64,000 nucleotides of DNA from Macrostomum hystrix (GCA_950097015.1 CATNEN010000015.1:124001-188000); one strand, 5' to 3'. Numbered from the stretch's first letter, positions 15,201 through 47,163 are shown. Translations and numbers: made by a program. Notes: generated by a model not told the origin, from the sequence alone.

Positions 15201-16659
15201 AAATGAATAGGATGTTCGGAAGGCTGCACTCTCAAGCTTACTTAGCTGAAGTATTAATTAATATAATTCACTTGATAATGCTAATGACGCTTTGCTGACG
15301 CATAATACTAGTTCAGGGCGTCTAGACTAAAACTACTAGCAACATTAGTTAATTCAGTTATCTTGGATAGTAAACCTTTATACTTGTTCGTATTATAATT
15401 TAAAATAGAATACCGAATTCATTACATCTTCACGATAGAGTTTCTAGAAAGTTCTTTTTTAGAGAAAAATCGTCGTTTTACTTACAGTTTATGAGTTATG
15501 GGCTTATGGCATATGTCATGTGACTCATGTCATATGTACATGTAAATATAGGCCTAGTGAATTTATTATTGTGAACATTTTTTTATAAAATAATTTAAAT
15601 CCTGCAACTTTTTCTCGAGAGACCTATATGCTGAAACATGGATAGTTACAATAACATGAATAAATTATTTATGTAGTATAGAAAAGAGTCTGATCCTAGT
15701 CTTTTTTATAGTGAATATCACATTTTAGAGGTTCTTTTTAAGCCTATCTAGCTATAGCTCTGAATTTGACAACTCATAAGGCTGTTATAGCTTATAAAGT
15801 TGGTTAAATGCCCTCAACTGAAAGGATATCAAGTTTCTTTGTTTTTCTTACTTTTTATTAGCTATAGGGTCCCAGGTCATTTCGGTGACAAGACATTTCG
15901 GTGACAGTCATTTCGGTAACAGAATTGGTCAGTTCGGTGACAACTATTTTTGCACCTAAATATTCTGAGAAAACAGCCTTCCACGATCCAGCAGCTGCTT
16001 AAAGCCTGCACTCGCCTTCTCAATCCAAAACTTGAAAAATGATTATTATACACATTTAATTAGGAACGAATAACTATTGAAACTATTGACTAGGCCCTAC
16101 TCATTAAATAATTTAATAATTTAACTCATTTAAAGTAAAACCCTGACTTAAACAGAGTGATGCAGCTTCTTATTAATAATTTTAGCATTATTTAATTAAT
16201 CTATATATATAAAAGTGAAAACTCTGTCTGTGTGTGTGTGTGTGCAACCTTTTGTCTTTATAGACGCCGAAACTGCTCAACCAAATCGCACCAAACTTTG
16301 CACATACCTAAAACCACCTACGCTGAGTGCAATAGGCTACTCAAATTCCCGAAAAATCATTTCCTTCCTGCTCAAAAGTGCAAAAAATGCTCAAAAATCG
16401 TCAAAAAATCACTCAATTCGACATATCGTCGCCCCACTTTGTCAGATTTTCTCCAAATTTGATCCACTTACACTTTACATGTTTTCCAACAATGCTGTCA
16501 ATTTTGAACATCTCTACTCAATCCAGAGCAAAGCTGCATCATCTCAAAGTGAGTCACTTTTTGTTTTCCGAGGACAGCCACCCCAACTCCCCTCCGCCAC
16601 TCTGCGGGCCAAATTTTATTACAGCCACCCCCTCCCTTCCCCGGGTGCCGAAGCCCGGG

Positions 16660-17268
16660 CTGTCAGAGAGGGCAATTCTGTGTCCTAGAAATGATGCCGC
16701 CAACGAAATTAACTACCAACTGCTTCAGGAGTTGCCAGGTGCAGTTTTCACCTACAAGTCAATTGATACAACATTGACTGATGACACTGCTGTGGAGTAT
16801 CCTGTTGAGTTTCTGAACTCTCTAGATCCTCCTGGAACTCCATCGCACAACTTGCAGCTGAAAGTTGGGGCACCAATTATGCTCCTCCGCAACCTGAATG
16901 CGCCAAGGCTGTGTAACGGCACCAGACTGATAGTCAGGCGGCTCTTCCCACACGTGATTGAGGCCACAATAATGACTGGATCTGGCAGAGGAGAGTCTGT
17001 GTTTGTTCCCCGGATTCCAATTATCCCCACGGACCTGCCATTTCAGTTCAAGCGACTGCAGTTCCCTGTGAGAGTGTGCTTTGCGATGACTATTAACAAG
17101 GCTCAGGGACAGTCGCTGAAGGTGGCTGGCATCAACCTGGAGACTCCTTGCTTCTCGCATGGGCAGCTTTATGTCGCCTGCTCCCATGTTGGAACTCCAG
17201 CTGGCCTATTCATTTTTGCACCAAGGGGAAGAACAAAGAATGTGCTGTATCCCCAGGCCTTGAGGTGA
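16660..17268 (+). pseudogene. Helitron RepHel PIF1 helicase C-terminal fragment
   Basis: ERAILCPRN...PVEFLNSL.PPG.P.H.L.LKVGAPIMLLRNLN..RLCNGTRL...QFPVRVCFAMTINKAQGQSL..FSHGQLYVACS. The Rep domain and N-terminal helicase motifs are absent. Confidence 0.92.
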
Positions 17269-27701: not shown

Positions 27702-29438
27702 TACCATATACTTATGCTTACGTAATGATGGGTTCAATAGTCGGTTTTGAGTGCTTAAATGTCGAGCCAGTCAATGTCACTCTGCGCGAACGAGTGCCAT
27801 GGACATTGTATAGGTTTCTTTCGCGATTTGCGAAAATAGAAATGCGACAACAGTTTCATTGCATGCCGGAAAGTGATGTCTATGGCCTTATGTGTATGTC
27901 TTTATCGAAGTTCTCCTTTAGAAACAGCCGCCAACATGCATACACTGTAAAATATTGCATTATTTTACAATCGCTTCGCGCACTCGTGCCAAGACATTTA
28001 AGCACGCAAAACCAAGTACTGAATACTATATTTAAGCTAGAAAACTGGCTATTGAGCAGCATTACGATTTAATTCTGGAGTCTCGACCATCAACTTTGCA
28101 TTTATTGCGTGCATTAAATGACTCGGCGTCCCTCATTGTCTAAAAAGCATTCAATGCAGGCCAGCCGATATGGCCTGCTAGAATATTATTGTCGTGCCTA
28201 AGCTAGGTTATTTCCCGTGGCCAAAAGTGCAACAATTTCGGGACATTCTTGCAGCATAGCCGGCCTCAGTGCGAGCTGGGAATTCCGATGTCGGTAAAAG
28301 GTCAGAGCTGGGCTGCGCAGACATACCAGTGTATGTGTGCTTACATAGACCGTTGTTTTGACAATGCGTTAGGTGGACCACTTAGTTTTGGTTAGAAAAT
28401 TGGGGAATAAACCTAATTTGGGACGCTTGGAAAATACTGTTGCATTTTTAAGCTCAAGAGGTCTTCAATTTGAGTGAATTGAACTGTTTGAACTGTGTTT
28501 TTAGGTGGACCAGGTTTAAACGGACCTTTAGAACAAGGTGGTGTAAGTGGACCAATATACTAGACAAGTAAGATTCCTAAACAGTCAATTTTTTCCGTAC
28601 TTGCGAAGCATGAAAGCTATGCAGAAATTTTTCTGCATAGAAATTTTTTTCTATTTTTATTTGTTTAAAAATTGTTTAACAATGCAGTAGTGAGTAACTG
28701 ATAGTATAGGTACTAAAATACATTTTCGGAAAAGTTTATGAGATATATATGATGAAATAAAGTGAAAAATGCGAATAAAATTTACCAGACATTACTAAAC
28801 TGCAAAGCAAAACTTAAACAAGAGTGAATAATTAGACAATAATTGTTAGCATTTTTTAGACGTGCAGTACGAAAAATACATAGTTTTGCCATTAGACAAG
28901 CCAAGCCAAAGTTTTTACATTCAAGTACGGTTTTAAGCTGCAGTTTGAAGGCACGCAGCGTTACGAGGAGAGGCGTTACAAATCAATTGTAAAAATGGTG
29001 GGTACACCGCGAAATGATAGGAAAAATTGCTAAGGCTAACTGCCTCAATGTCACGTCGGTATGCTAGAATATTTAAATGAATTTTTTTTCCAGAATATTC
29101 ATTTATTCTGGAGAGATATTCAAAACCTTTCAGAGACCTATTACGTGCAATGTACTTGCAACAACGGGTGCGGCCTTGTAAGGGGTATATAATATTTCTG
29201 ATATTTTGGGCACAGCTCTTTTTAGGGCTAAACGCCAATATTTATGGTACTCTAGTGTAAAAGAAAATGGTGCATCTTGCAAACGATACAATCGAATTTT
29301 TGCTATCGAGGTGACATAATTAATCAATCTCAGCCATCAATTATTGAGGTTAGGGACGATATTATTGAATAAGTCCTGAGTGAGCTCAGCGCAACAGAAA
29401 AAGGTACCATGAGTTCGTGAGACTTAGAGCCGAACCAG

Positions 29439-32400
29439 CTATTTTTTTAGTTTCTGAATTTCATTAAAAAACTTGCTTTTAAGCTTCAGAACAGATCGAT
29501 CCTTCAGAGCTGGCTCATCTAGCTTTAGCTTATGCAGTGCATTTAATCCAGGAACTTTTCCACCTGATTCTTCGAGCATTCTTTGGAAAGCACGTTGGAA
29601 CGCCGCGTCCTCCGCTTCTGACCACTTGACATGCACCTGCTTTAGCTTTCGGTCTTTCTTCCTGCTGACTTTAGACGGAGGTTCGAAGGAGGGATCATCC
29701 TCGGAGGAATCAGGCGGAGAATTCGGATGCGATTTTGTCTCCGGCTTTCTCTTTTTCTTAGATTCTTTTAATTCCTTCAAAGAAAGAGGTGCACCGCGAA
29801 AATCAAGCTCTGTCTGCTGTTCGTCATACTGTTCTGATGGAGCTCCGGAGGTAATGCGACATGGACGCTTTGATTTCCTCAGGGTGGAATTAGCTGGTTG
29901 TGGTCGCTTTCTAATCAAACAAGACTTGCTACTCAAACTTTCTTCATTCTCGTTTGCTGACTTTGCTGACTTCTTTGTCTTGGAAACAACTTCGGCCTCA
30001 TTCGAGTCATCCAAATCAACGTCAATGTCATCAACCTCGATTTCCTCCAGTTTCTTTCCTTTCAGCTGATCTAGCTTCCCAGATTCAATCGCAAGCATCA
30101 GCTTTCCGACTTTTGCTAACTCGATTGTTCGCTCATGAATTCGATAAAACGTATGATGCACTTGGAGGCTGTGGCCTAGATGTCTGGACAGCCAGCCTAA
30201 TTCGTTTTCATTCAATTCGAGGATTTGTGACACTGTTGCCACATATTTCCTCAGTTTTGTTGACGTTAAGCGTTCAGGATGTTTTAGGTCTGCACACTTT
30301 GAAGTGACATTTTGAATGGCTTCAAACGGTGATAGATAACGCATTCCGTTGAGCATGCCAAAAACGTACTCGTTGCCCGTTGGCGAATGGCGCGTGCTTA
30401 TGAGCTTATCTATTAGAGTGGCCACCTCTAGGGGCACAAGCAGAGGAACCTTTTTTTCTGCTCGTTTGCCGCGGACATACGGAAGAAACATTCGCCCTTT
30501 AATTTTTAACTCAAGCTCACTGAGTAGAGAGTCAGTAGTGTCGTCATCTTCTTGATCGAGCTTTTTTGCTGCTTCCCAGTCTTTAAGCGTCAATTTGAAG
30601 GTTTCTGACGCTCGCCTTCTGTTCAAAATCATGAGGCGGACTGCAACTAGCTCAGCAACGCTTTTCCAGTAGGCAGGTTCGGATAGATTATCATCAGCAA
30701 CCTGTGCCAGCGCCTGCTTTAAATGACATGTGATGGTCCTAATGTCCTCCGTCAAGGGCAGAGTTTCGGCTTTGTCGGCTTTTCTTTCCTTTAAAGTTAA
30801 ATGTGCGATGGTTGTAACTTTTCGCTTCCAAAGACTCTCAAAGACGGAAATAAAGTTTCTTCTTTCCTCAACCTTTGATTTAAGATCGCTTTTTAAGGCG
30901 AAAACCATGGAGACTTCGGCAGCCGTCTTCAGGCTAAAGCCGATTTTTAGCGCAATCGAAGGAATGTCAAAGCTGTCAGATGTCGCTTCGCTTTTCTTGC
31001 TCATAAATCCTGCGACTGTTCTTGTCGCCTCAACAAGATCATCGAAATTACGAGCGGTTAGTGAATTCTCCAAATCAATGGACGGCTTCTCTACACGATC
31101 TCTAAACGCTACTAACAAGCGTGCAAGCTCCCTCATCTTAGTCGAAACAATCTGTCGGCCTGTCTTTCCAGCTGTGTAGCCTTCAAACCAAAAGTGTCCA
31201 AGACTTAAAATTAATTTGTCAGAGCGGACGACTGTAGAAAGATGGTCCTTTTTCATTCGGCTGAGCAGATCTTGGTATTCTTGAGGAAACGTTGAAGGGA
31301 GGCACGACGACAGCAACAGACAATTTCCTTGCGAAGCAGCATCCGAACGACTTGTAGATTTCGAGTTGATTCTAAATTTGCAGCGGTCCCAGTGTCGACT
31401 TATTTCGCGTCCATAAAAAAATCCAAAGCAGTGAACACAAGGCAGATAGGTGTGTACTTCCGCAGACTCCATGGTCACGCTTTTCTCCCGACAGACAATA
31501 ATTTTACCGTCCTTTTCATCCTTCAGTACAGCAATGTTGTGATGAAAATCGCCTAGAAGTCGCAGTCTGTCCATCTCCCGATTGTAACCTAACAGAGGAA
31601 TTAAAAAATGTTGCCAAATAAATACACGATACGATCACAAAAAAGAATAATCGATTTATATAATAATTGAAATCATACATCTAGAGGTTCTTAATAGAAC
31701 CTGTTACGCACGAGTACATTCTGACTTGCCTCTCAGACAAAATTAAGAATAGCTAGTCTATAATAGAAAAGAAAACACAAAAATCTTAACTACGAACCAT
31801 TCATTCAAGCTATCTAGACAATCTAAACAAAAAAGCTGCTTTAACTTAGACGATGAAAGAAACTTGAAGAAAAGAAACTTAACTAAAAGAAGCAGATCAA
31901 CTTAGACTTACCATCTGAATTAGAATCATACGAAAGCGCGCGCTGCACGTCTAGTTGATCACTATGACAACGAAGGATATGCCTTCGTATTTTCGAAAAC
32001 AGCTGATTACAAAAAACGCAATTGTGGCGCTTCTTCTCAAATGATCGGCCGTTCATCTTCTTCTGTGCATTTAACTCAATTTTTTCATTTTCATCAGCAA
32101 TCATTTGAAGAGCTGGATGTAGTTCTGCCGACAACTCCTCGAGCTCAACGTCGCTAAAGTCGAATTCAGGCCCACCATCAACATTCCCAGCAGCAGTACT
32201 TTCTTCAACACAGGAATTCATCACCTTCTCAAACTCTTCGTCGTCATCTAAATCACTTGCTTCGCTTTCATCGCTCTCATCTAAGTCAACTTTTAATTTT
32301 CTAAAGCCAGCAACACCTAACTGCAACTTATTCATAACACGACTTCTAAGAGCAGTGAGCCTTGAATTTGAAACGTCATTCGTCGACGGGACATTCATCC

Positions 32401-34965
32401 TCGTAGTCTGCTTCAAGGGAGGACGTCCGAAAGAATTCTGAGTAGCTGTCGTCAACCTGGCCGATGCTGAGGGTTGTTCACGCAACTTCTGAACTGATGT
32501 CGGCTTGGTCACTGCCTTCTCTAAACTCGGTTCATCGCCAGACGCGCACAGCTCGCTGTCGCAAGCGTCAGCATCAGCAGGTACATTGGAAGATCCCTCT
32601 GCTTGTGGGATGGTCACGTCGCTGTCCATCTGCACAATGATTGATTTCGATGAACTTGTGTAAAAATATAATGCTAAGATACTGACAAACACATTATGAT
32701 TCAATGAGGGTTTAGCTGGACCCTGCGTCTGAAAGTCTGTGTGGCAGTCGGTGCTTGAAGCACGCACAGTCAATGTGAACGAGATTCCATGAGGGTTTAG
32801 ATGGACCCGCAGCTTATAATTCGCCCAATTATAATGATATTCATTAAGTAAAGCCAATGCACTATTGCAGCTTTGGTGTAACTAAACTAAGCAACACTCA
32901 CCGATTCAGAATGATGACGTTGTGGTGACGGCTTTCGGTCTTGTATTTTGTTAGCCGATGACCTGATCATGAGATGCACAGCACTTGAGTCGGATTCTTC
33001 GACAATAGCATTCTCCTTTGATGGCTGGAGCGCCAAGTTACTGGGAGAGTTCTTCTTGCCTCCAGTATGATTTCTCCGAGTCTGAAGAGCAGTCGCTGAC
33101 TCTTGAGTAGCTGTGGTCAACCTGGCCGATGCTGAGGGTTGTTCACGCAACTTCTGAACTGATGTCGGCTTGGTCACTGCCTTCTCTAAACTCGGTTCAT
33201 CGCCAGACGCGCACAGCTCGCTGTCGCAAGCGTCAGCGTCAGCATCAGCATTGGAAGATCCCTCTGCTTGTGGGATGGTCACGTCGCTGTCCATCTGCAC
33301 AATGATTGATTTCGATGAACTTGTGTAAAAATATAATGCTAAGATACTGACAAACACATTATGATTCAATGAGGGTTTAGCTGGATCCTGCGTCTGAAAG
33401 TCTGTGTGGCAGTCGGTGCTTGAAGCACGCACAGTCAATGTGAACGAGATTCCATGAGGGTTTAGATGGACCCGCAGCTTATAATTCGCCCAATTATAAT
33501 GATATTCATTAAGTAAAGCCAATGCACTATTGCAGCTTTGGTGTAACTAAACTAAGCAACACTCACCGATTCAGAATGATGACGTTGTGGTGACGGCTTT
33601 CGGTCTTGTATTTTGTTAGCCGATGACCTGATCATGAGATGCACAGCACTTGAGTCGGATTCTTCGACAATAGCATTCTCCTTTGATGGCTGGAGCGCCA
33701 AGTTACTGGGAGAGTTCTTCTTGCCTCCAGTATGATTTCTCCGAGTCTGAAGAGCAGTCGCTGACGACTCTTGAGTAGCTGTCGTCACTGATGTCGCATG
33801 GCGTTGATGCGTTTTCTTTTGATCAGCTTTACGAAATGTGGAATCCAAGGCAACTGGGTGTTCGTCTGTGCGGACGGCGAAAATCTGGTTGACTGCTCTC
33901 ACTTTTGCTTCTCTTTTATGTACCCTGGCCGATGCTGAGGGCTGTTCACGCGACTTCTGAACTGATGTCGGCTTGGGCAGCGCCTTCTCTAAACTCGGTT
34001 CATCGCGAGACGCGCACAGCTCGCTGTCGTAAGCGTCAGCATCAGCATTGGAAGATCCCTCTGCTTGTGGGATGGTCACGTCGCTGTCCATCTGCACAAT
34101 GATTGATTTAGATGAACTTGTGTAAAAATATAATATAAGATACTGACAAACACATTATGATTCAATGAGGGTTTAGCTGGACCCTGCGTCTGAAAGTCTG
34201 TGTGGCAGTCGGTGCTTGAAGCACGCACAGTCAATGTGAACGAGATTCCATGCATGAGGGTTTAGATGGACCCCACGTATGAAAGTCTGTTTGGCAGTCG
34301 CTGTTTGAAGTACCCAAAGTTATTTTGAACGAGATTCAATGAGTGTCTAGCTTGGACCCACTTCTGAAAGTCTGTTTCTTACAGCACTTCATGTTTGTGA
34401 ACTGGATTCAAAGAGGGTTTAGCTGGACCCCGCCTTTGAAATAGGAATGTCTCGAATGAAATTGGGGCTCGACATTTGATTTTGAGTTAAAGAGCAATAA
34501 ATCTAAGTAGCACTAAAGTTAGCAGTTCCTACCTTCATTGCTTTGTCCTGCTCGTTTGGTGGGAAGCATTTTTCTGAAATGTTTTGAGATTGATGGATTT
34601 TGAGTCAGTTTGCTTGGATAGTGTTTGACGGTGAATTATCTGACAATGGTTATGACATGTGATCATTAATATTTCTTACCACAAGATGAATGCAGACTTA
34701 GAATTACACTTGTTGGTATGTTGCTTCGTGGCTCCCAAGAATTTTGATTGCTGGAATATAAAAGCACTGTTTATTAGCCGAACACATATGGGAATATGCA
34801 AACAACTTTCAATAGTATATAGAAGGAACAGAGTGCAGTGGTAAATAAGTATTTTGAAACTCACCTAGAATATCCTTTCCACTTAATGTAGAGCTTCTTT
34901 TTTGTGCACTTGATAATATTTTCAACGTAGAAACGCCTGCTATCTTGGGGCTTTTTCTTCTGCAT
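29439..34965 (-). CDS. Chromodomain - low-complexity - Zn-motif - tyrosine recombinase - Myb/SANT-like protein, 7 exons, ~1,332 aa
   Basis: Exons 34865-34965, 34680-34750, 34533-34573, 33567-34091, 32902-33294, 31912-32629 and 29439-31588 sum to 3999 nt with no internal stop. Chromo: RFYVENIIKCTKKKLYIKWKGYSSNQNSWEPRSNI. Zn: CVFC..RHILRCH and LPCVHC..RHWDRC. YR: LNRRRASE, RGKR, STKLRKYVAT, HLGHSLQVHHTFYR. C-terminus: KWSEAEDAAF..VPG..LKDRSVLKLKSKFFN. Exon 3 and the links across 34092-34532 are the least certain. Confidence 0.85.
32440..34250. repeat. Tandem exon-intron duplication (665-bp period, three related exon starts)
   Basis: Near-identical 272-nt introns at 32630-32901 and 33295-33566. 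Three exons begin ATGGACAGCGACGTG (MDSDVTIPQAEG). Confidence 0.92.
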
Positions 34966-35080
34966 GCTGGCGTGTAAGAACAACTAGTTGACAGAATCAG
35001 TCTGTGAGGTCAACTAAATCATTTTGAAATCTTGTTTTTAGAGTTGGGGATTGGTGTCTGTTGTTGTGGTTAGGATGATG

Positions 35081-35131
35081 TTTATGTAGACCCTCCATCT
35101 TTGATTATGACTCAGCCAGCTACGGACCAAT
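35081..35131 (-). promoter_or_regulatory. Candidate promoter of the chromo-YR gene
   Basis: TATA-like TACATAAA (35088-35081), TGACTCA at 35108-35114 and a CCAAT box at 35127-35131, ~120-170 nt upstream of the ATG. An in-frame stop precedes the ATG. Confidence 0.35.
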
Positions 35132-37708
35132 TAGAGCCCATCGGGAGGAAGAGAAGGGAATGGCCAACGTTCAGACGGACGAATAGAAAGGAATGGAAGA
35201 AGGGTTGAATGGGTTGAGACACCCCATCATTGACTGTCCATTTAAACACAGGATTGGCTAGCTGTTTTGAGGTTGGCTTGGACCTCAGTCAGGAGGGTTC
35301 GGCTTTTCTTAACTTCATTATCTAGCCCATAGGCTGCCGACACTACAAACGTTTGAATGTGAAGCACAAAAACTATTTTCGGAGTCCGTGCCTTAAGCAA
35401 GGAAGGCAATTTCTTTTTTTGTCTCCTTAAATTAAGCAGTGCTGCAAATGCAGTCATTCGAAATTATTTAAATCATGGCCTTCAATCAGGGTTCTCTAAA
35501 ACCAACACTATGAAGCATTTGTTTCAAGTATGATAGCAACAGGACAATATGTGAACCATCTGAGTTCATAAATCACAATAAATAAATAGAAAATAAGACA
35601 ATAAATAAACATCTAATCTTTAGTTATTGCGGATGCATCGCAGTTTCCATTTGTATGCTCATCGAATATATGTTAATCTAGTTTTACAATCCACTCACTT
35701 CAGCCAGTTCAGCAAGCTCTGCAACTCAAAAATGCCACAATGTATTAAATATGTTCTCAAAAGTGCTTAAATATGCATCCTGAAGAGCTCTGTCATGAAG
35801 CAAAGAACTTTTCATACAAACAAAACATACACTTTGTATGTATGAATTTCGTCTGTTTTTGGGTTAGGTGGACCTCGGCGATGTGGTTTAGGTGGACGGA
35901 GTAAAAGGTCCTTGTAAACTACAATACTCATTACTTAAAATCTAAACTACTTTAAGTAGAGGGACGTTGACCACTGCAATGACTGCCTTTTAGACTATGG
36001 AGTCGGTCAAGCTAAACCCCCTCTGTACTTTCCATTAAAGAAATATGAAGTGGTCCACTTAAAGGGTCCATGCAATCGAAAGGTCCCGCTAACGAGGCTT
36101 TTAAACCGACGAAGAGTCTACACAAACACACATACACTAACACATACAGGTAAACTGCATTTCAGTCGCGGGTTTCAGCCCGCCAGCCCGCCCACCCAGT
36201 CTTTAGCGAACTCGAGCTTGACTTGTCACGCTTCTCAGGAGGCGGTGGGCTCGCTTTCTCTCTCCTCCCTGCCCCCCTGTTCCCTAGGAGTGGGTGAGTT
36301 GCGCTCTGCCGTTGACTCACAGGCTGGGCCGTGCGTGGCTAGCCTTGCCGTGCCTGTAGGAAAAGCACGATGCAACTTGCAGAGCAGCTCAGCTCGCCTT
36401 GTGGAGCTGTTCGCATCCTTAGCTGCCGTAGTGCATCTGCAAGCGACCTTTCCCCTTTATTACGCCTGCCCTAATTGGGTCATATGTGCTGCTGACAGCA
36501 CAGCCGCAGCTATTGCGTGGCGCATCTGAAGGCTGCGTACGGCTGTTCAGTCCATGGACTGGGGGGACGCCAAAGCCACCTCAATTACCCCAGCTGATGC
36601 CGGTACCCATTTAACAGCTTGGTGAACTGAAGCAATGCAGATTTAAGTGTCTTGCTAAAGGACATTAATTGTTCCAGTGGAGTCGAGTGAAGCATGGTCA
36701 TAGACCAGACGCCAGCTAGCGGAGTCTCCAGTGGAGTCGATACTTTTGTGAGTGAAGCATGGTCATAGACCAGATGCCAGCTAGCGGAGTCCACAGAAAG
36801 CAAATAACGGATTCCTGCCGAGTGGCGCCTTTGTGTGTGTGTGGGAGTTTCTGTGTTGCTTACCGCTTCGACTTCGGACAGGCCGGAGTCACCTGGCTAC
36901 TGATAAGGGCGTTATCGCTAGTGTACACACGGGCGGCCTCTGCCCAGCGCAGTTGGATTGAGAATACCCTGGAGAAGTTCTCATTTTCTCACAGTAGTTA
37001 AGAGTGACGGCATCATCGGTTTGGAGTTGTTCCAGTTGAAATCTGCTCTTATCAGCGGCTGTCTGAAGTTCCCTAACATCGCACCATGTAGTTATAAATA
37101 CTGCTTGCTTAGCAGCCGTGCAGCAATCAGTAAACAAAAATTTAACAGAAAAAATAAGCATTCTATGAGGTAAGCAAAGTAGGTAAGCAAGCAGTTGGGC
37201 AAACATGTTACCAAACACGCGCAACACCGGCAAACGTTTATACTGCTAAAATATATTATTTTGGCAGTCTTTAAAATTGTTGCCGTAACCACCTGTGGTA
37301 TTTCTTAAGAAGCAAGCTTGAGACCGTCAAAAGTCAACATGTGATTCACTATTTAATTTTTACCGTACCGAGTGGCACGCAAGCCCCTTCATGTCTTTGA
37401 ATGTCCACAGACCATTGTGTTCGAATGCCTTAACATTACATTTTCCGAGGTCTCCGTGCCTATTTTGGTCTGAGCACAGCTGAGAACAGCGCCGATTCTA
37501 AAGTGAGCTCAGCTTTGGCGGAAATTAGCCCTTAAAGCGCTCTTAGCTCGTAATAGAATTATTATGTGTCCTCTATACTCTACTTATCATGCGACTCAGT
37601 AGTAGCAATGTGAACATTTTACACTTTTCTAATCCCTTTACTAAAATTCAAAACTATCTATATATATTTTTTTATGCTAAAATTCGGAATGCCCGCATCG
37701 CCCTGCAG

Positions 37709-40259
37709 GCTGGAGCGCCTGGCCTACTCGCATGACGACTTCTCCGACCTCGGCAAGCTGATCGGCAATGGCGCGTTTTTCTCCGTGCACCTGGTTGAGA
37801 CCACCAAGTACAAGGAGGCCCGGCCTGACATGCCGAAACGAGTGGCGCTGAAGGTTTTGGATGAAACAGCGGACGATCAGATTGTTGAGTCCTTCTTCTC
37901 AGAGGCCGAGCTGCTGCTGGGCATGGAGCACAGATACATCATGCAGGTGGGTGCCAGCGGGTTCTAACCTGGCTCTGACTGTTTTGTTGCTAAGCCAATC
38001 GCCAGCAGAAACGAGCCATGGGGAAGGGGCTATGTGCATAATATATTAGCCGATATGTATCGAAAATTAGCAAACATGTATTGTAGCTCTTAGATGGTGA
38101 CAAAGAACGTGGTTTTAATAATAATTTTTTGTCTAATATTTTTATAACGAAGTTCCATGCTTACTACTATAAGTATAGCAGCTTCAATGTTAGCATATTT
38201 TTTGTGGTTGCTACAGCCAAAAAAACTTTCGTATATAATATATTCGCGCAAAACCTGCCACTGATTCTGCATATAACAATACGGGCTATTCTTATTCTCT
38301 CAAGACTGTTTGTCTCTTCTCTTCCTGTTGCAGATTTGATAGTTCCAAGAGTCCAGTGTGGGATATGTTTATTTGCTTATTCATTATGTGCATTTCAACT
38401 ATATGTAGCACTGCACTGTGCTAATATCTACCTGTTAGTAAATAAGAGTGATTCTGCGCAGTAAACATGCTGTGCTATATTTAGCTATCCGCAGTGCGCA
38501 CATGGCACATTGTACCCGGTACAGTGCCATCTGCGAACTATTATTTTACTTGCTCACATAAATTTTCTCCTGCCTATTGTGTTAACGAGTTCTGCTGCTC
38601 TGCGCATTATTACTCACTTCTCGCTGTCTCATAGCTTGTTTTTGTTTCCATTGGCCCGGACCAGTAGTTATTTATGTTCACTTGTTATCCGAGTTCAATA
38701 TATATTTAAGATTCAGGTGAGAGAATGAGACTCAGGTGAGAGAATGAGACACAGGTGAGAGAATGAGACTCAGGTGAGAGAATGAGACACAGGTGAGAGA
38801 ATGAGACTCAGGTGAGAGAATGAGCCTCAGGTGAGAGTATGAGCCTCAGGTGAGAGAATGAGACTCGGGTGAGAGAATGAGCCTCAGGTGAGAGTATGAG
38901 CCTCAGGTGAGAGAATGAGACTCGGGTGAGAGAATGAGACTCAGGTAAGAGTATGAGCCTCGGGTGAGAGAATGAGACTCGGGTGAGAGAATGAGACTCA
39001 GATAACAGTATGAGCCTCGGGTGAGAGAATGAGACTCGGGTGAGAGAATGAGACTCGGGTGAGAGAATGAGACTCAGGTAAGAGTATGAGCCTCGGGTGA
39101 GAGAATGAGACTCGGGTGAGAGAATGAGACTCAGATAAGAGTATGAGCCTCGGGTGAGAGAATAAGATTCAAGGGAGAGAATGAGACTCAGTTAAGAGAA
39201 TGAGCCTCAGGTGAGAGAATGAGAGAATGCGCTAAAAGTATGGTACTGTAAAGCAAATATGAGATCATTTTAGCTTTGCTTCCGTCTCGACAGTGTAAAG
39301 GTTTTACTTTTTGTCAGAGCTTAAGTTGACTTTCTGATGCGCAAGCTCTATAGAACGGGGCAATTTTGCGGAGAATTGTCAGACTGCATTTCCTATCCCT
39401 GACCTGCCGCAGTTCCCTAATTTCGTCATCCCCACCGCAATGTGCCATGCCGCAGGTATTCGGCATCTGCGCCAGCACCCGGCCTTTCTGCCTGCTGGTG
39501 GAATACTGCGAGTTCGGCGACCTGCAGACCCTGCTGCGCCGCACAGCCAGCGGTGACCTCGGCCATCAGCGAAGGAGCCACTTGGTGCCCAACGGCAGCT
39601 CCTACAACTCCACGGTGGCCACCAACGTTGAAGCCGTCGAGCTGATGCCGTCCACCTCTGCCATGGGGGCATCGCCGCCAACGACTGCTGTGGCGGATAC
39701 TTCAGCTGCAGACGACTCGGCGGTCGAGCTGCGGACGCGACCTCTGGAACTCGAGGACCTGCTTCGCATGGGGTCGCAGGTGGCCAACGCCCTGAGCTAC
39801 ATCAGCAAGCGCGGCCTGGTGTTCCGCGATCTCGCCAGCCGCAACATCCTCGTTACCGCCGACTACGACATCCGGCTTGCCGACTTCGGCATGTGCCGCA
39901 AGCTGCCGCTGGGCAACCGCGCCGCCTGCGTGGTGTCCGAGTCCGAGTGCCTCCCAGTCCGCTGGCTGGCGCCCGAGACCGTGCGAGAGTCCCGCTTCTA
40001 CCCGGAGTCTGACGTGTACGCCTTCGGTGTACTGCTGTGGGAGCTGTTCAGCATGGGCGAGCAGCCCTGGACCGGCTACTCTGTTGAGCAAGTCTGGGAG
40101 ATGAAGCTGCAGAATGCTGACTGTCAGCTGCCGCGGCCGCAGCGGGCTCCGGAGAATGTCTGGGCCCTAATGCGTGCCTGCTGGTCTGCGGACCGGGCGG
40201 CAAGGCCCGGCTTCAGCTCGCTGACCTACCAGCTGCACCAGGCCGCCACGCACTGCTGA
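37709..40259 (+). CDS. MuSK/ROR/Nrk-family receptor tyrosine kinase, exons 8-9 (kinase domain); same gene as 20434-23499 (total ~950 aa)
   Basis: Exons 37709-37946 and 39456-40259. The phase-2 junction gives TYPK|LERLAYSHDDF, similar to MuSK NPKLLSLEYPRNN. Motifs: IGNGAFFSV, VALK, FRDLASRNILV, DFG, LPVRWLAPE, SDVYAFGVLLWE, CW. Confidence 0.92.
38712..39225. repeat. 19-bp minisatellite (TCAGGTGAGAGAATGAGAC), ~27 copies, in RTK intron 8
   Basis: Period 19 is visible. Confidence 0.95.
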
Positions 40260-40782
40260 TGGGAGACGGTGACGTCATTCGTGCCATGGGACCATCAAAC
40301 CGAGCTCTGCGATATCATAATTGGATTTGCTTTCTAACGCACGGCCATGGAGGGGTCGGTGGCAGAGCGGTGAAAGCGTTTGCTTCTCGCACCGCGGTCG
40401 CAGAGAGAATTCTTGTCGTGTAATATAGGCCCTTGAAGTCCAACCACCAAGCACTTTAAAAGTGTACACTGCCTGACGATAAGAAAGACAGGGCAGATGT
40501 ACACACCTGTGTGAGCGTATGCCTGCGTACAGTATGTGTGTGCGTGTGTGCTCAGGAGTCAGCGAAATGGGCATAATTGCCTCCTCGCTGGCTGCAGGTC
40601 TAGTGTCATCAAATTATGTGCCACTGCCCACAGCCCTCCTGCAATTTTTTTAATTATCACTTGGCCATATTCGTTGCTTTCGTATTGCGCGCTTTTAAAT
40701 GTTATCTGAACAACCAGGGGCATGCTGGGCAGCCTGCCAGTGCACAGAGAGGGTAGTTCAAAAGTCGTCTAAAATTACCTAC

Positions 40783-41462
40783 TCCCCAGAAACTCCATGG
40801 ATTCCGCTCCCCAGAAACTACAGGGATTCCCGCTCCCCAGAAACTCCATGGATTCCCGCTCCCCAGAAACTTCAGGGATTCCCGCTCCCCAGAAACTCCA
40901 TGGATTCCCGCTCACCAGAAACTTCAGGGATTCCCGCTCCCAGAAACTCCATGGATTCCCGCTCCCCAAAAACTTCAGAGATTCCCGCTCCCCAGAAACT
41001 CCATGGATTCCGCTCCCCAGAAACTTCAGGGATTCCCGCTCCCCAGAAACTCCATGGATTCCCGCTCACCAGAAACTCCATGGATTCCCGCTCACCAGAA
41101 ACTCCATGGATTCCCGCTCACCAGAAACTTCAGAGATTCCCGCTCCCCAGAAACTCCATGGATTCCCGCTCACCAGAAACTCCATGGATTCCCGCTCACC
41201 AGAAACTCCATGGATTCCCGCTCACCAGAAACTCCATGGATTCCGCTCCCCAGAAACTCCATGGATTCCGCTCCCCAGAAACTTCAGGGATTCCCGCTCC
41301 CCAGAAACTCCATGGATTCCCGCTCCCCAGAAACTTCAGGGATTCCCGCTCCCCAGAAACTTCAGAGATTCCCGCTCCCCAGAAACTCCAGGGATTCCCG
41401 CTCCCCAGAAACTTCAGGGATTCCCGCTCCCCAAAAACTTCAGGGATTTCCGCTCCCCCAGA
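40783..41462. repeat. 26-bp minisatellite (CCCCAGAAACTCCATGGATTCCCGCT), two alternating variants
   Basis: Period 25-26 is visible. Confidence 0.95.
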
Positions 41463-41852
41463 AACCCAAGCGATTCTGCGTCGCTCAGAATCTCAACGGA
41501 TTCCCACCACTCAGACGGACGCTTTCTAAAAATAAGTCAAAAAAGAATTCGGTTGGCAGGCTCTCGTCTCAGCTCGCAGCCCAGAGAACTGTCAGGGACC
41601 AGAATTCATTCCTTGTTGCTTTTTAGTGCTCATTTGTACAGCGTTTTATTCACTTTCAGTGCCAACCGTCTGGTCTCACCCATTCCCGTGCGATAAAGCC
41701 ATCCTACTCATTCGCTCTGATTGTAAAAATGTAATTGTTCCATTCCCTGTATGATCCACCATCACTCTTTTTGAGCTGCCTTGCCTTGCTTTTGTAGGCT
41801 TCTCATTGTGCGCTTATCTTGTGCTACGCTTGTTGGATATTTTTATGAGCCC

Positions 41853-42803
41853 ATTAGGCCAAGAAGGTCATTAGGCCAGTAGGTCTAGAAGGTCATTAGG
41901 CCAGTAGGTCTAGAAGGTCATGAAGCCAGTAGGTCTAGACGATCATGAGGCCAGTAGGCCTAGAAGGTCACGAGGCCAGTAGGTCTAGGTCATGAAGCCA
42001 GTAGGTCTAGAAGGTCATTAGGCCGGTAGGTCTAGGTCATGAGGCCAGTAGGTCTAGAAGGTCATGAAGCCAGTAGGTCTAGAAGGTCATGAGGCCAGTA
42101 GGTCTAGGTCATGAAGCCAGTAGGTCTAGAAGGTCATGAAGCCAGTAGGTCTAGAAGGTCATTTGGCCAGTAGGTCTAGAAGGTCATGGGGCCAGTAGGT
42201 CTAGAAGGTCATGAAGCCAGTAGGTCTAGAAGGTCATTTGGCCAGTAGGTCTAGAAGGTCATGGGGCCAGTAGGTCTAGAAGGTCATGGGGCCAGTAGGT
42301 CTAGAAGGTCATGAAGCCAGTAGGTCTAGAAGGTCATGAAGCCAGTAGGTCTAGAAGGTCATGAAGCCAGTAGGTCTAGAAGGTCATGGGGCCAGTAGGT
42401 CTAGAAGGTCATGAAGCCAGTAGGTCTAGAAGGTCATGGGGCCAGTAGGTCTAGAAGGTCATGAAGCCAGTAGGTCTAGAAGGTCATGGGGCCAGTAGGT
42501 CTAGAAGGTCATGAAGCCAGTAGGTCTAGGTCATGAAGCCAGTAGGTCTAGAAGGTCATGGGGCCAGTAGGTCTAGAAGGTCATGAAGCCAGTAGGTCTA
42601 GAAGGTCATGGGGCCAGTAGGTCTAGAAGGTCATGAAGCCAGTAGGTCTAGAAGGTCATGAAGCCAGTAGGTCTAGAAGGTCATTAGGCCAGTAGGTCTA
42701 GAAGGTCATGAAGCCAGTAGGTCTAGAAGGTCATGGGGCCAGTAGGTCTAGAAGGTCATGAAGCCAGTAGGTCTAGAAGGTCATGAAGCCAGTAGGTCTA
42801 GAA
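41853..42803. repeat. 25-bp minisatellite (GCCAGTAGGTCTAGAAGGTCATGAA)
   Basis: Period 25, ~38 copies. Confidence 0.95.
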
Positions 42804-43254
42804 TGTGAATCGCTGCTCACTATTGTATGGTTTCCTATTACTTTATTCTGGTGCTACTGAGCTAATGCCAGTCCTGTGCAGCAAGATTATTTTGAGTGTT
42901 TTTGTCTATTTAAATTCAGCCGAGGACAAAGAGTTGCCCTCAGAGGCTGCAGAGCTGCAGCAGGCGATTGTCATTGCGCCAGAGCACAGCTCCCAGTTCT
43001 TGAGCCAACTGTTATCCCCTTCTCCGCCTGAGCTCAGCCATGCCGAGCAACTAGATGAGAATTTTACTGTAGAGTCCGCGATTCCCTGCATAAGCAGTTT
43101 TTTATTCTTTTTGCTGTTGTTTTTAGCATCGGATGCCTTTTTTGTATTTATTAAATTGTTTATTCGATTAGCTGTTATAACGACCTACTTGTTATACTGT
43201 TTTCATTTTGCTATGCCAGACATTTGAACTCCAGTTGCAGGCCTAGTGCTCAAC

Positions 43255-43700
43255 TCTCCCTCTGCCTTCTAACCTCCCTTCGTCTTCTCCCCCCTCTGCC
43301 TTCTAACCTCCCTTCGTCTTCTCCCCCCTCTGCCTTCTAACCTCCCTTCGTCTTCTCCCGCTGCCTTCTAACCTCCCTTCGTCTTCTCCCCCTCTGCCTT
43401 CTAACCTCCCTTCGTCTTCTCCCCCTCTGCCTTCTAACCTCCCTTCGTCTTCTCCCTCTGCCTTCTAACCTCCCTTCGTCTTCTCCCCTCTGCCTTCCAA
43501 CCTCCCTTCGTCTCCGCCCTCTGCCTTCTAACCTCCCTTCGTCTCCGCCCTCTGCCTTCCAACCTCCCTTCGTCTTCTCCCCCTCTGCCTTCTAACCTCC
43601 CTTCGTCTTCTCCCCCTCTGCCTTCTAACCTCCCTTCGTCTTCTCCCCCTCTGCCTTCTAACCTCCCTTTGTTTTCTCCCCCTCTGCCTGCCTTCTAATC
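43255..43700. repeat. ~33-bp pyrimidine-rich minisatellite (TCTGCCTTCTAACCTCCCTTCGTCTTCTCCCCC)
   Basis: About 13 copies are visible. Confidence 0.93.
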
Positions 43701-44674
43701 TCATTTTCGTCTCCCCCTCTGCCAAATCTCTTCCGTAAGTTTCCCTAGTCCACTCTCCGTGCTCAAAACCCTCGCACACTACTTTGGCTATGCAAAGGCT
43801 ATGCTGAGATGTAGGCAGGGTAAGTTGACCAGATTGGACAGATGTGACTCATCTGGGGAGGGGTTGCTGTTTGAATGCGCACAGGCGCGAAGGCAGGGGT
43901 GGCTGGCCGCACTGTTTACTGTTCACAGTAAACACTTTGCTATCTGGCCCAGCCCGTGTGCTGCCGTGTGCTGCCTGTTTCTGTTTGTGTACTCCTGTCC
44001 TGGTCAAAGAATAATAGAACTTCCTTGATCTGAATTCGGCCGTGCAGTTGAAACCCATGTAGTCTGCCTATAGGGCACGATCTTGGTTGAAGGTAATGCT
44101 CCAGCCATAATGAGTTGCAGCAGCTAAATAATTCACGGGTCTGTTTCTACTTCTGATAGTTGCGTCCATCAATTAGAACCTGGAATAGTCCGATTATAAA
44201 AGTGCAGCCAGCTCCATTGGACAGTTGGACCTACTCTGCGCTTCCCAGAACTTATTCCGCTTGATGACGTTGGCGCAGGATCAAGTTCAGCCGTGTGGCC
44301 TCATTAATTATTCATGATGCTGAGAGCTGGGACCATTCTGCAGCCGAGGCTTTGCGTGGGAATATGACCGTGCCCAGTAAATACTGTAAATTAATGTATT
44401 GCGAGCCCCACACTTGGCTTGAGCCTGTACGGAAACAAATAATTTATTCACAAGCCTCGCCGAACTAAGCAGGCAAGCGCCATTGGCTGGCAGGCTCTGC
44501 AAGGGGATAGATTGTGTGCGCATTGAATGACTCAGGTATAAATATGCACAGGTGTGTTTGTGCATTGCGGCACAGTGCAGACTGGCCACAATAGCAGCAA
44601 GCAGTGCAATCAAACAGCAAGAAAACTTTAATTACATTGCAGTAGCGCTTAGCGCCTGCGACATTCACCAGACT

Positions 44675-47163
44675 ATGCAGTCTGGAGCACCGGAGGACGA
44701 ACTCGGTGCCTGCGGAGGCGGCTGCGGCCATGAACAGCAGCTGGCGGACATTGACAATGTGGACCCCGCTGAGATCTGCTTCAGCTGCCGGTCCAGGCTG
44801 CCAAACATTCAGGTGAGCCTTTGTGACTCACCTTCACCTTACCCTGATCGGATGATAGCCTGTTTTTGTATGTGTGTGCATCACGATGCCACACACTGGT
44901 GTGTAAACACGCTGCAATTCCGGTCACGAGTGCTGTTTTGGGTCAGCTGCCTTTTTATCATGGTTATCGAGTAGCAAAGATGCTTGCAAGTCTTAGGCAT
45001 TCAGAATAAGCAATACTTTCACAGCTGCAATTTGCAGAATGAGAATTTCAGATTTGCTGTTTCTGGTGTTGCCAAAATTAATAATGATAGATTGACATTG
45101 TGATTGTGATAGAGTGCCAGTTTGTGATGGACTGACAGTTTTTGATGGAGTGCCAGTTTGTGATAAAGTGACTGTGATGGAGTGCCAGTTTGTGATGGAG
45201 TGCCAGTTTGTGATGGAGTGCCAGTTTGTGATGGAGTGCCAGTTTGTGATTGAGTGCCTGTGTGATGGAGTGGCAGTTTGTGATGGAGTGACAGTTTGGG
45301 ATGGAGTGCCAGTTTATGATGGAGTGATAGTTTGTGATGGAGTGCCAGTTTGTGATGGAGTGCCAGTTTGTGATGGAGTGCCAGTTTGTGATGGAGTGCC
45401 AGTTTGTGATTGAGTGCCAGTTTATGATGGAGTGATAGTTTGTGATGGAGTGCCAGTTTGTGATGGAGTGCCAGTTTGTGATGGAGTGCCAGTTTGTGAT
45501 TGAGTGCCAGTCTATGATGGAGTGATAGTTTGTGATGGAGTGCCAGTTTGTGATGGAGTGCCAGTTTTTGATGTAGTGCCAGATCCAAGCAGCTTCTTCT
45601 CCCAACCCCTCCAGGTGGACAGCTCGCTGTCGGAGCGCCTGCAGCGGCTGCGGCTGAACGGGCTCAGCAAGGCGGTGGCCGTGGACCTGCTTCGCTGCCC
45701 CCCGCCGCGAGGCATGCGTCGCCGCTCGCGCTCCGGTCTGAACACGGCGCTGCTGCTGGCGGTGAAGGAGATTTACAGCCTGCAGGACTTCAGCAGCGTG
45801 CAGCTGCTGGCCAAGGGCTTCTTCTCCAATGTCTACCGGGTGACGCTGGAGCGCAGTGGGCGGCAGCTGGCGCTGAAGATGAACGGCGAGACGCACCAGA
45901 GATCCGCGTACAGGGAGCATGAGATCATGTCCAAGCTGAGCCACCCGAATGTGCTTCGCTACCACGCAGTGTGCATTCACGGCGGCCGGCTGCACTGCCT
46001 GTTCGACTACATCGACGGTGGCAGCCTGGAGCAACTGCTGGCTGAGCCCGGCCGACGGCTGAGCTGGCGAGTGCGCCTCGGACTGGCCCTGGATGTGGCC
46101 AGAGCCATGGCCTATGTGCACGGACAGGTGAGCTGGGGCTGCAGCATTGCCTGTGCGGGCCAGCCTCGCTTTCGTGTAGGCCGATTACATGAGGTTTTTG
46201 GGGCTTGGAGACTGACCAGACGCAACTTGACTCTCGCCCCCGTCCCCCCCGATCCGGCAGGGCTATTTCCACCGCGACATCGCCTCCAAAAACATTCTGA
46301 TTCGCACGGACTCGGACGGCCCGCGCCGCTACCAGGCCGTTGTGGCGGACTTCGGCCTGGCCGTGAAGATTCCCCGCTACGCCACCCAGCGGCTGTTGGA
46401 GTGCGTCGGCAGCCCCTTCTGGATGGCGCCCGAGTGCATGCGCGGCTGCGGCTTCAGCGTTAAGGCGGACGTCTTCAGCTACGGCATCGTGCTGTGCGAG
46501 ATGCTCACCCGCCTGCCGGCAGACCCGGACTTCCTGCCCCGCCTGCCCAGCTTCGGCGTCGATGCAGCCGTCCTCGAGTCCTCGCTGGTGCCGCCCGACT
46601 GTCCGCGCCAGCTGCTCCAGCTGACCCTGTCCGCCTGCTGCCTGGAGCCCGCCGCGCGGCCGAGCTTCAGCGACCTGGCCGGAGCTCTGCAGCGCCTGCT
46701 GGACAAGCTGGAGGCCGGCGCTCTCGTGGAGACAGTTCGCGGCGTCCCCGCTGCCGCCTCAAATGACGCCGCTGCTGACATTGACAACGAGGACGACCTG
46801 CTGGAACAGCAGCGGCTAGACGCCAGCTGGCAGGAGCGGCGGCAGCAGCAGCGCTGCTGGAACCCCGGCATGAAGCACAACCCGTTCGTGACGGTGCGCT
46901 GGGAGAGGAATAAGTCCTGCCTGCAGGCTGGCGGTGCGCCCGCCCTCCTGCTGCCCACCGGCCCCGAGCTGCGCTCGCCCTCCGGCCTCAACCGGGCCTG
47001 GTCCTACCCGGACCTGTCCCAGGACCTCATCGAGTTCCTGGAGATTGCCCGCCGCTGTAGGCCGTGCCATGGCGCCACAGACGACTCAGGCGTGTCCTGC
47101 GTGTCCTGCGTGTCCTGCATGTCCTCCTCCATGGACACCCTGGGCGACTCCAGCTTCGCCTGA
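44675..47163 (+). CDS. TESK: TESK/Cdi-family (LIMK-related) dual-specificity kinase, 3 exons, ~517 aa
   Basis: Exons 44675-44812, 45615-46127 and 46261-47163 join in frame. TESK signatures: KGFFSNVYRV, ALKMN, LSHPNVLRY..VCIH.G.LH, LSWRVRL.LALD, FHRDIASKN, VVADFGLAVKIP, VGSPFWMAPE, KADVFSYGIVLCE..RLPADPDFLPR..FGVD. The start exon is less certain. Confidence 0.9.
45112..45583. repeat. 18-bp minisatellite (GAGTGCCAGTTTGTGATG) in TESK intron 1
   Basis: About 26 copies, ending ~30 nt before the acceptor at 45614. Confidence 0.93.

Follow-up and report, generated by a model that had tools for sequence, protein, structure and literature searches.

A Crypton-like tyrosine-recombinase DNA transposon of Macrostomum hystrix with a predicted N-terminal chromodomain

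A 64-kb stretch of Macrostomum hystrix DNA (GCA_950097015.1 CATNEN010000015.1:124001-188000; here called the window, on which all coordinates are based) holds an element whose gene encodes a chromodomain and a predicted tyrosine recombinase (YR). The element is real, intact and recently active. We read it, with a probability of roughly 0.8, as an intact Crypton-like DNA transposon that moves by tyrosine recombination and carries a single seven-exon gene. The encoded protein has, from N to C terminus, an HP1-type chromodomain, a repeated acidic/Ser linker, two zinc fingers, a two-domain YR and a three-helix domain. An earlier note, written from the sequence of the window, had proposed a mobile and intact DNA element with introns, and the sharp ends and four copies with unrelated flanks found in this study support that proposal.

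The limits of the element were determined as follows.

28318-36149, minus strand: whole element, 7,832 bp, given by the limits of nucleotide homology to three Macrostomum lignano copies

The closest protein is P0001, a M. lignano gene model that is listed in UniProt as a chromo-domain protein and is 93% identical over the large open reading frame (ORF). The M. lignano loci compared were that of P0001 and those of its two cluster mates (L001-L003; L003 is NIVC01001364). Homology to them runs at 72-88% identity and stops abruptly at both ends. The four copies have the same base-precise ends, their flanks are unrelated except for small unrelated repeats, and the M. lignano loci are not syntenic with the window. 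Because the flanks are unrelated, the element is not the single-copy syntenic gene that the earlier note had considered as the outcome that would speak against mobility; the copies at unrelated loci expected of a mobile element are there, three of them in M. lignano.

The M. lignano ORFs differ from one another by <0.2%, with a synonymous divergence (dS) of 0. Between the window and M. lignano, dS was 0.22 and the ratio of nonsynonymous to synonymous divergence (dN/dS) was 0.14, which indicates purifying selection. Sequencing runs of the window's own organism match the element sequence exactly, and M. lignano-like runs contain a relative at 90-95%, so that the source of the window is either closely related to the M. 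lignano reference or a lineage that has diverged from it. An internally deleted derivative was found in two M. lignano runs, as a contig joining the 5' subterminal region to the middle of the ORF (31126>35862) with non-canonical ends. No other long ORF lies within 28318-36149, save one antisense inside the gene. Chromo was the only Pfam domain above threshold in the element ORFs and the spliced N-terminal peptide, and neither reverse transcriptase (RT) or RNase H domains nor long terminal repeats were found in the element. The behaviour of the element is that of a transposon whose protein is under selection.

Direct repeats of GTCT type finish both ends of the element, next to a pair of inverted arms, and a 12-nt motif, GGTCCACCTAAC, lies at a subterminal position on each side.

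36139-36149, minus strand: 5' outermost GT-rich tail CTGTATGTGT, a degenerate GTCT-type repeat and candidate crossover region; (GTCT)n stands here in the M. lignano copies
36116-36138, minus strand: 5' terminal inverted-repeat arm, 23 nt, 83% complementary to 28328-28350; kept in the M. lignano copies and partly in the sister family described below
35863-35874, minus strand: subterminal motif GGTCCACCTAAC of the 5' side, 275 nt in, a candidate protein-binding site at the same position in L001-L003
28368-28379, minus strand: subterminal motif GGTCCACCTAAC of the 3' side, 50 nt from the end, at the same position in every copy
28328-28350, minus strand: 3' terminal inverted-repeat arm, 23 nt, the imperfect pair of the 5' arm
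28318-28327, minus strand: 3' outermost tail GGTATGTCTG, a GTCT-type repeat and candidate crossover region

When at most two mismatches were allowed, GGTCCACCTAAC had 12 matches in the 64 kb, all of them within the element (2.98 expected; 0/100 shuffles). The 7-mer GTGGACC was not enriched across the window (7 observed against 4.9 expected), whereas the longer GGTCCACCTAAC was. All three M. lignano copies are bracketed on both sides by (GTCT)n tracts of 30-560 bp in the orientation of the element, and at the M. lignano loci (GTCT) tracts of at least three units are almost confined to element boundaries and to one orientation. The observed insertion sites look sequence-defined by GTCT tracts, a feature absent from the earlier note.

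M. lignano also has a sister element, L004, whose protein is 47% identical and has no chromodomain. At the 5' border of L004 stands a ~400-bp (GTCT)n tract, and at the 3' border there are three GTCT units. L004 also has 46 exact GGTCCACCTAAC copies, mostly in a 71-bp internal satellite, and its termini can be aligned with those of the window element. The persistence of these non-coding features, when the proteins have diverged so far, speaks for the termini, the GTCT brackets and GGTCCACCTAAC as putative cis-acting sites of both families.

The gene runs from 34965 to 29439 on the minus strand in seven exons with GT-AG borders. Exons 3-7 were placed with the M. lignano protein P0001 as a guide.

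34865-34965, minus strand: exon 1, 101 nt, with the start codon at 34965, the first chromodomain half and a GTGAGT donor
34680-34750, minus strand: exon 2, 71 nt, with the second chromodomain half and a pyrimidine-rich AG acceptor upstream
34533-34573, minus strand: exon 3, a linker of 41 nt; junctions 34574>34682 and 34092>34535 in RNA contigs
33567-34091, minus strand: exon 4, repeat-unit exon 1, a Ser/Asp/Glu-rich linker with a 132-nt in-frame extra segment
32902-33294, minus strand: exon 5, repeat-unit exon 2
31912-32629, minus strand: exon 6, repeat-unit exon 3, with an acidic stretch and zinc finger 1 (CVFC...H...H, 32020-31961)
29439-31588, minus strand: exon 7, with zinc finger 2 (31439-31380), the YR core-binding and catalytic domains, the C-terminal three-helix domain (29657-29442) and the stop codon

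The joined frame of 3,999 nt encodes 1,332 aa with no internal stop. The earlier note had read two small exons that splice into a chromodomain, followed by five further exons without a stop. The small exons have canonical GT/AG sites and yield a Pfam Chromo match, and the rebuilt frame gives exactly the 1,332 aa it had proposed. A ~130-aa unit rich in Ser, Asp, Glu and Ala opens each of exons 4-6, because a 665-bp unit of exon plus intron has been tandemly triplicated. The finger at the end of exon 6 is C2H2-like and the one at the start of exon 7 is C2HC. The Cys/His columns of both are nearly invariant among 55 relatives, so that the two Cys/His motifs recognized before are conserved across the family.

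The chromodomain was examined with the peptide of exons 1 and 2. It matched Pfam Chromo PF00385 with E = 2.6e-8 and 34.1 bits, above the gathering cut-off of 25.1, and the M. lignano counterpart scored 29.2-31.5 bits. The closest solved structures were HP1, CBX2, CBX5 and SUV39H1 (E down to 2e-6). In phmmer alignments to 1kna and 6asz, F12, W28 and Y31 line up with the three HP1 cage aromatics, which we take to be those numbered Y24, W45 and Y48. The aromatic-cage F, W and Y claimed earlier are in place, and the domain is recognized by its profile hidden Markov model (HMM) in the spliced model.

For M. lignano, the annotation rests on transcripts assembled both de novo and with genome guidance, to which TransDecoder was applied (PMC5730564). 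The models P0001 and P0048, from two independent loci of this species, are an identical 1,184-aa protein with Chromo and YR, and the proposed fusion of chromodomain, zinc fingers and YR has the same architecture in these transcript-derived models. In Logan contigs of M. lignano RNA runs, the splices between exons 2 and 3, exons 3 and 4, and exons 6 and 7 (intron 31589-31911) were seen. The splicing of exons 1-3 to exon 4 that had been predicted is borne out for the first two of these junctions; the junction of exon 1 to exon 2 is taken up below. Runs of the window's organism are colinear through the introns and look like DNA. The chromodomain and the YR are likely transcribed as one unit, of which the first junction is not directly proven.

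The catalytic residues were placed in the 711-aa ORF, to which the residue numbers refer.

30144-30614, minus strand: catalytic residues R321 (30614-30612), K370 (30467-30465), T439 (30260-30258), R442 (30251-30249), H468 (30173-30171) and Y477 (30146-30144)

As expected from the earlier reading of an R, K, R, H, Y set, R321, K370, R442, H468 and Y477 vary little or not at all across 26 homologues of 26-54% identity. One correction was required. An invariant Thr (T439) stands where the HxxR box usually has His, and five of the six catalytic positions are kept. An AlphaFold (AF2) model of residues 95-540 had a predicted local distance difference test score (pLDDT) of 78.6. The best Foldseek matches of this core model were XerH, XerA, lambda integrase, XerD and Cre (probability up to 0.98), and in a second structural alignment the top 36 rows were all tyrosine recombinases or type IB topoisomerases. 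XerH aligned with a Z of 10.3 over 272 residues, and the XerD catalytic domain with a Z of 9.1-9.4 and a root-mean-square deviation of 3.5-3.7 Å over 150-158 residues. Since the sequence models are silent on the YR, the fold search was needed to reveal it. Pfam Phage_integrase PF00589 was matched by one homologue only (P0028, 2.5e-6), so that the YR profile match foreseen in the earlier note was obtained with this homologue and not with the window ORF. The conserved R-K-R-H-Y residues and the modelled fold show that the large ORF is a tyrosine recombinase core, with predicted catalysis.

The C-terminal 72 residues form a conserved three-helix domain; of its conserved Trp residues, the second is absent from the Macrostomum proteins. 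This domain had no Pfam match, and its family profile reached only E 0.2-0.7 against SMRT SANT, Tbf1 and Myb. Its AF2 model has three helices and was matched best by homeodomains, RAD Myb and GT-1, with template modelling (TM) scores of 0.5-0.77 and E above 1. The Myb/SANT-like end suggested before therefore stands at the level of the fold, as a three-helix homeodomain-like bundle; a significant sequence match was not found.

In an exhaustive profile search, 11,521 cluster representatives matched with E no higher than 0.001, 3,214 of them with E no higher than 1e-30. In the atlas search the family was found mainly in chordates, cnidarians and arthropods, mostly without a Pfam label. Among the N-termini of the best matches (55 long regions), 18 had SET, two BRCT, one an ATF7IP-binding domain and two Chromo, one of these being the Macrostomum protein. 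The ATF7IP-binding domain is joined to a YR core in the tarpon protein P0131 (Megalops cyprinoides LOC118774233, RefSeq model). The pipefish protein P0146 (Nerophis ophidion LOC133564121, RefSeq model) has a full chromodomain with a YR core (Chromo E = 8.5e-15). In a maximum-likelihood tree of 186 cores, the Macrostomum chromo-YR lies in a small, fully supported clade of Macrostomum-type proteins, and the pipefish chromo-YR lies deep in a fish clade, beside the ATF7IP fusion. These separate positions indicate that the chromodomain was gained at least twice. A word-based search with the chromodomain end of P0001 returned P0001 alone, and the pipefish fusion surfaced only through the profile search and the Pfam scan of N-termini. 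Literature searches for Crypton or YR with chromodomain, SET or Macrostomum found no description of a chromodomain on a tyrosine-recombinase element, in line with the earlier suggestion that the fusion was undescribed. That suggestion has to be narrowed for gene models, as the pipefish model holds an independent fusion and chromo-YR proteins are present in public databases under automatic names.

With respect to classification, DUF3504 (PF12012) was matched neither by the window ORF at E up to 1 nor by 26 relatives at E up to 0.01. The YR belongs to a large, often SET-associated metazoan family and not to DIRS or classical Cryptons, as the earlier note had suggested; no DUF3504 match and no RT were found. 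DIRS/Ngaro was rejected for the absence of RT, RNase H and long terminal repeats. CryptonA and CryptonI were rejected because there is no DUF3504 match and a conserved C-terminal domain and inverted arms are present. A domesticated Crypton-derived host gene of the ZMYM, KCTD1 or KIAA1958 type was rejected because the copies are non-syntenic and five of the six catalytic positions are kept. The element is, by definition, a Crypton-like YR DNA transposon set apart from CryptonA/I and DIRS/Ngaro; CryptonV, a Repbase group named in PMC5753468, is known to us by name alone.

The element resembles Cryptons in that the YR is its sole enzyme, without RT, and in having defined ends with short direct repeats of one sequence as well as internally deleted derivatives. 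A further likeness would be the route proposed here, in which the element leaves as a circle and crosses over at a short core that matches the target (CACCG/CAYCG in CryptonF-1_cRei, PMC9977147). Classical Cryptons have no inverted repeats and no C-terminal domain, and their 4-6-bp terminal direct repeats are the recombination substrate (PMC3212892). The present element differs on several counts. It has no HMM-detectable similarity to DUF3504; its ends carry 23-nt inverted arms and iterated subterminal motifs; its gene has six introns and a tandem array that includes exons; and its protein has zinc fingers, a C-terminal domain and a chromodomain. Its candidate core is, moreover, a microsatellite unit, GTCT. 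L004 is likewise a Macrostomum YR element with microsatellite brackets, and differs in having no chromodomain.

A YR ORF tied to a protein of the heterochromatin pathway has a parallel in vertebrates. Kojima and Jurka (2011) described an intact Crypton-like YR in an intron of bird ATF7IP, for which a fusion transcript was guessed (PMC3212892). The tarpon protein P0131 fits the ATF7IP-YR fusion proposed for birds, where the bird YR is known here by description only. The ATF7IP-intron YR is fixed, syntenic and probably domesticated, whereas the element described here is multi-copy and non-syntenic, has its own ends and has a chromodomain as its partner.

Chromoviruses (Ty3/Gypsy long-terminal-repeat retrotransposons) and Polinton/Maverick elements have DDE integrases with a chromodomain, and the chromovirus domain steers integration to heterochromatin. 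These elements share with ours the fusion of a mobile-element recombination enzyme to a chromodomain. In chromoviruses and Polintons the enzyme is a DDE integrase and the chromodomain is C-terminal, whereas here the enzyme is a YR and the chromodomain is N-terminal, of the HP1/Polycomb class and with a full aromatic cage.

Cryptons (Goodwin et al. 2003) are believed to leave their site as circles and to enter a new one by crossover of a short terminal sequence with a matching target (PMC3212892). This Goodwin model has been confirmed for CryptonF-1_cRei, whose ends are CACCG and whose targets are CAYCG (PMC9977147). By analogy, we infer a circle and GTCT-crossover route for the present element. 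The recombinase, with its zinc fingers and C-terminal domain, would bind the 23-nt inverted arms and the GGTCCACCTAAC motifs; the 12-nt motif may be read by the zinc fingers and the C-terminal domain. Excision would yield a circle, with a GTCT-type spacer between the two arms, a layout like that of a lox or att site. Reintegration would take place by crossover within a GTCT-type sequence and would leave the copy between GTCT repeats. Such a crossover would explain why copies lie between (GTCT)n tracts. The chromodomain may add to this scheme. We infer, more weakly, that it binds methylated histone tails and so biases where, or from where, recombination occurs. Its role may be that of a tether to methylated chromatin, as in chromoviruses, or that of a reader of the silencing mark on the element's own satellite-rich copies.

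Several observations weigh against the reading as a Crypton-like transposon moved by its own YR. Taken alone, the 711-aa ORF and the repeat ORFs had no Pfam match at E up to 1, the integrase included, and a profile of the 26-sequence family gave weak zinc-finger matches only, and no solved recombinase, against PDB sequences. An invariant Thr takes the place of the HxxR His, which leaves catalysis as a prediction. M. lignano yields only three full copies and one deletion derivative. Empty sites, circle junctions and polymorphic insertions did not come to light in read comparisons over stretches of up to 6,000 letters, which are shorter than the element. The 23-nt imperfect inverted repeat and the C-terminal domain, both of which classical Cryptons are without, are present. 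The window copy ends with no more than two GTCT units (one or two at each end), and (GTCT)n may accordingly be either the target or sequence brought by the element. A rival reading is a host gene family, in which a domesticated recombinase serves as a chromatin or DNA-binding factor and was spread by segmental duplication or microsatellite-mediated ectopic recombination. The Thr, the strong purifying selection and the multi-exon structure would suit such a family, annotation treats many vertebrate relatives as ordinary genes that carry SET or ATF7IP domains, and recent duplication is plentiful in the M. lignano assembly (PMC5730564). We nevertheless consider it very improbable, given that the duplicated unit has identical, base-precise ends in four places with nothing common in the flanks and with no synteny between the window and M. 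lignano. The inverted arms and the motifs at the ends are also conserved in a family of 47% protein identity, the remaining catalytic residues are invariant across the 26 homologues, and an internally deleted derivative exists.

The place of the chromodomain within the transposon has to be weighed as well. Intron 1, which splits the chromodomain, is unspliced in both M. lignano contigs that cover it, and no splice of exon 1 to exon 2 was seen in the RNA contigs available, which counts against a single working gene. In addition, model P0047 has no Chromo match and short 326-aa UniProt models of the chromo-YR gene exist. The chromodomain exons might then lie outside the working recombinase, in a separate or non-productive transcript, with translation starting downstream (for example at the Met that opens the repeat exon or the 711-aa ORF) and the fusion being an artefact of transcript assembly. 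This seems unlikely to us. One of the unspliced contigs begins in the flanking microsatellite and therefore is probably read-through RNA or DNA and not the element's own mRNA. Two runs show exon 2, with half of the chromodomain, spliced to exons 3 and 4 with the frame kept, and exons 1 and 2 together, across a canonical GT-AG intron, give a chromodomain above the Pfam threshold that has been kept between lineages at dS 0.22. The entire 3,999-nt frame is open, and the two Chromo-bearing M. lignano loci are independent and still give one identical protein model. If the chromodomain is part of the recombinase, it could tether the enzyme to nucleosomes methylated at histone H3 lysine 9 (H3K9) or lysine 27 (H3K27), so that integration or excision at GTCT tracts would occur preferentially in heterochromatin. 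The whole YR family would then have repeatedly recruited H3K9-methylation modules (SET, ATF7IP-binding and chromodomains) and would form an undescribed animal class of chromatin-coupled recombinases. We put this forward tentatively, with a chance well below one half. It is also possible, and likewise doubtful, that the element is mobile and its chromodomain does not choose targets. The domain would instead read the H3K9-methyl mark on the element's own satellite-rich copies for excision from, or retention in, heterochromatin, or would recruit or antagonize host silencing of HP1 type, and targeting would be directed purely by the GTCT core. GTCT brackets surround all M. lignano copies, and the chromodomain-less sister family has the same GTCT association; the site preference is therefore independent of the chromodomain. 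Internal satellite arrays of up to ~32 kb are typical substrates of heterochromatin, and the SET and ATF7IP-binding domains of relatives are writers or cofactors and not tethers. Against this, the chromodomains of chromovirus integrases are established targeting modules.

Few eukaryotic transposons have been studied as little as YR elements. Integration guided by a chromodomain is established in the case of the DDE integrases of chromoviruses, and we found no report of it for YR elements. The element would let the cooperation of a histone-mark reader with a sequence-specific crossover core in target choice be probed. The case is tractable, with intact, recently active copies, clear candidate cis sites (inverted arms, 12-nt motif and GTCT core) and transgenic M. 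lignano, a species amenable to transgenesis (PMC5730564). That YRs have been fused repeatedly to SET, ATF7IP-binding and chromo domains suggests a broader connection between YRs and H3K9-methyl heterochromatin in animals, which bears on the persistence of such elements and on how domesticated YR genes, the ATF7IP one among them, arose. A site-specific recombinase with a built-in chromatin reader is also of interest to genome engineers.

Inside the element, the repeated exons belong to a tandem array.

32439-34431, minus strand: internal tandem array of ~three 665-bp units, each with a coding exon, and 85-89-bp satellite units with the motif variant GGTCCA[G/T]CTAAA

Every internal 85-89-bp satellite unit carries a GGTCCACCTAAC variant. 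The exon-bearing array has 3 units in the window and in L001, ~9 in L002 (L002:3500-13600) and ~25 units over 32 kb in L003 (L003:10800-43240). The annotated protein stays at 1,184 aa despite this expansion, and most repeat exons must therefore be skipped. In M. lignano runs the 85-bp satellite part has a word depth of 500-950, far above that of the exons, and is therefore abundant elsewhere or highly transcribed. In contigs from three runs of the window's organism, 32435 is joined to 33690 with five extra letters. This junction marks an allele or a copy whose array is shorter by two repeat units, and array length is polymorphic. Repeat units 2 and 3 and the M. lignano protein lack the 132-nt in-frame segment of exon 4 (33567-34091), which may be an insertion or a small intron that went unrecognized. 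The breakpoint of the deletion derivative, 35862, immediately adjoins the 5' subterminal GGTCCACCTAAC (35863-35874), and aberrant recombination at the motif may have produced it. In M. lignano (L001:1331-26587), a large ankyrin/armadillo-repeat gene has one copy of the element within an intron, oriented as the gene is, and this position may explain read-through RNA over the 5' end of the element.

Outside the element, a 19-bp satellite array of 27 units lies at 38709-39224; the satellite inside the element consists of 89-bp units (34159-34377). The satellite surroundings described in the earlier note were thus found both nearby and within. The nearest coding ORFs encode tyrosine-kinase domains (39366-47163) and a Pif1 fragment (16378-17268). 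The tyrosine-kinase catalytic-domain ORFs, 39366-40259 and 45504-47163, are on the plus strand, opposite to the element and 3-11 kb from it, with the 19-bp satellite in between. The ORF at 16209-17268 has a Pif1 helicase 2B domain (E = 2.5e-19) and lies in a repeat common to M. lignano (L001:24827-25202), which is probably a Helitron-type or other helicase-bearing repeat.

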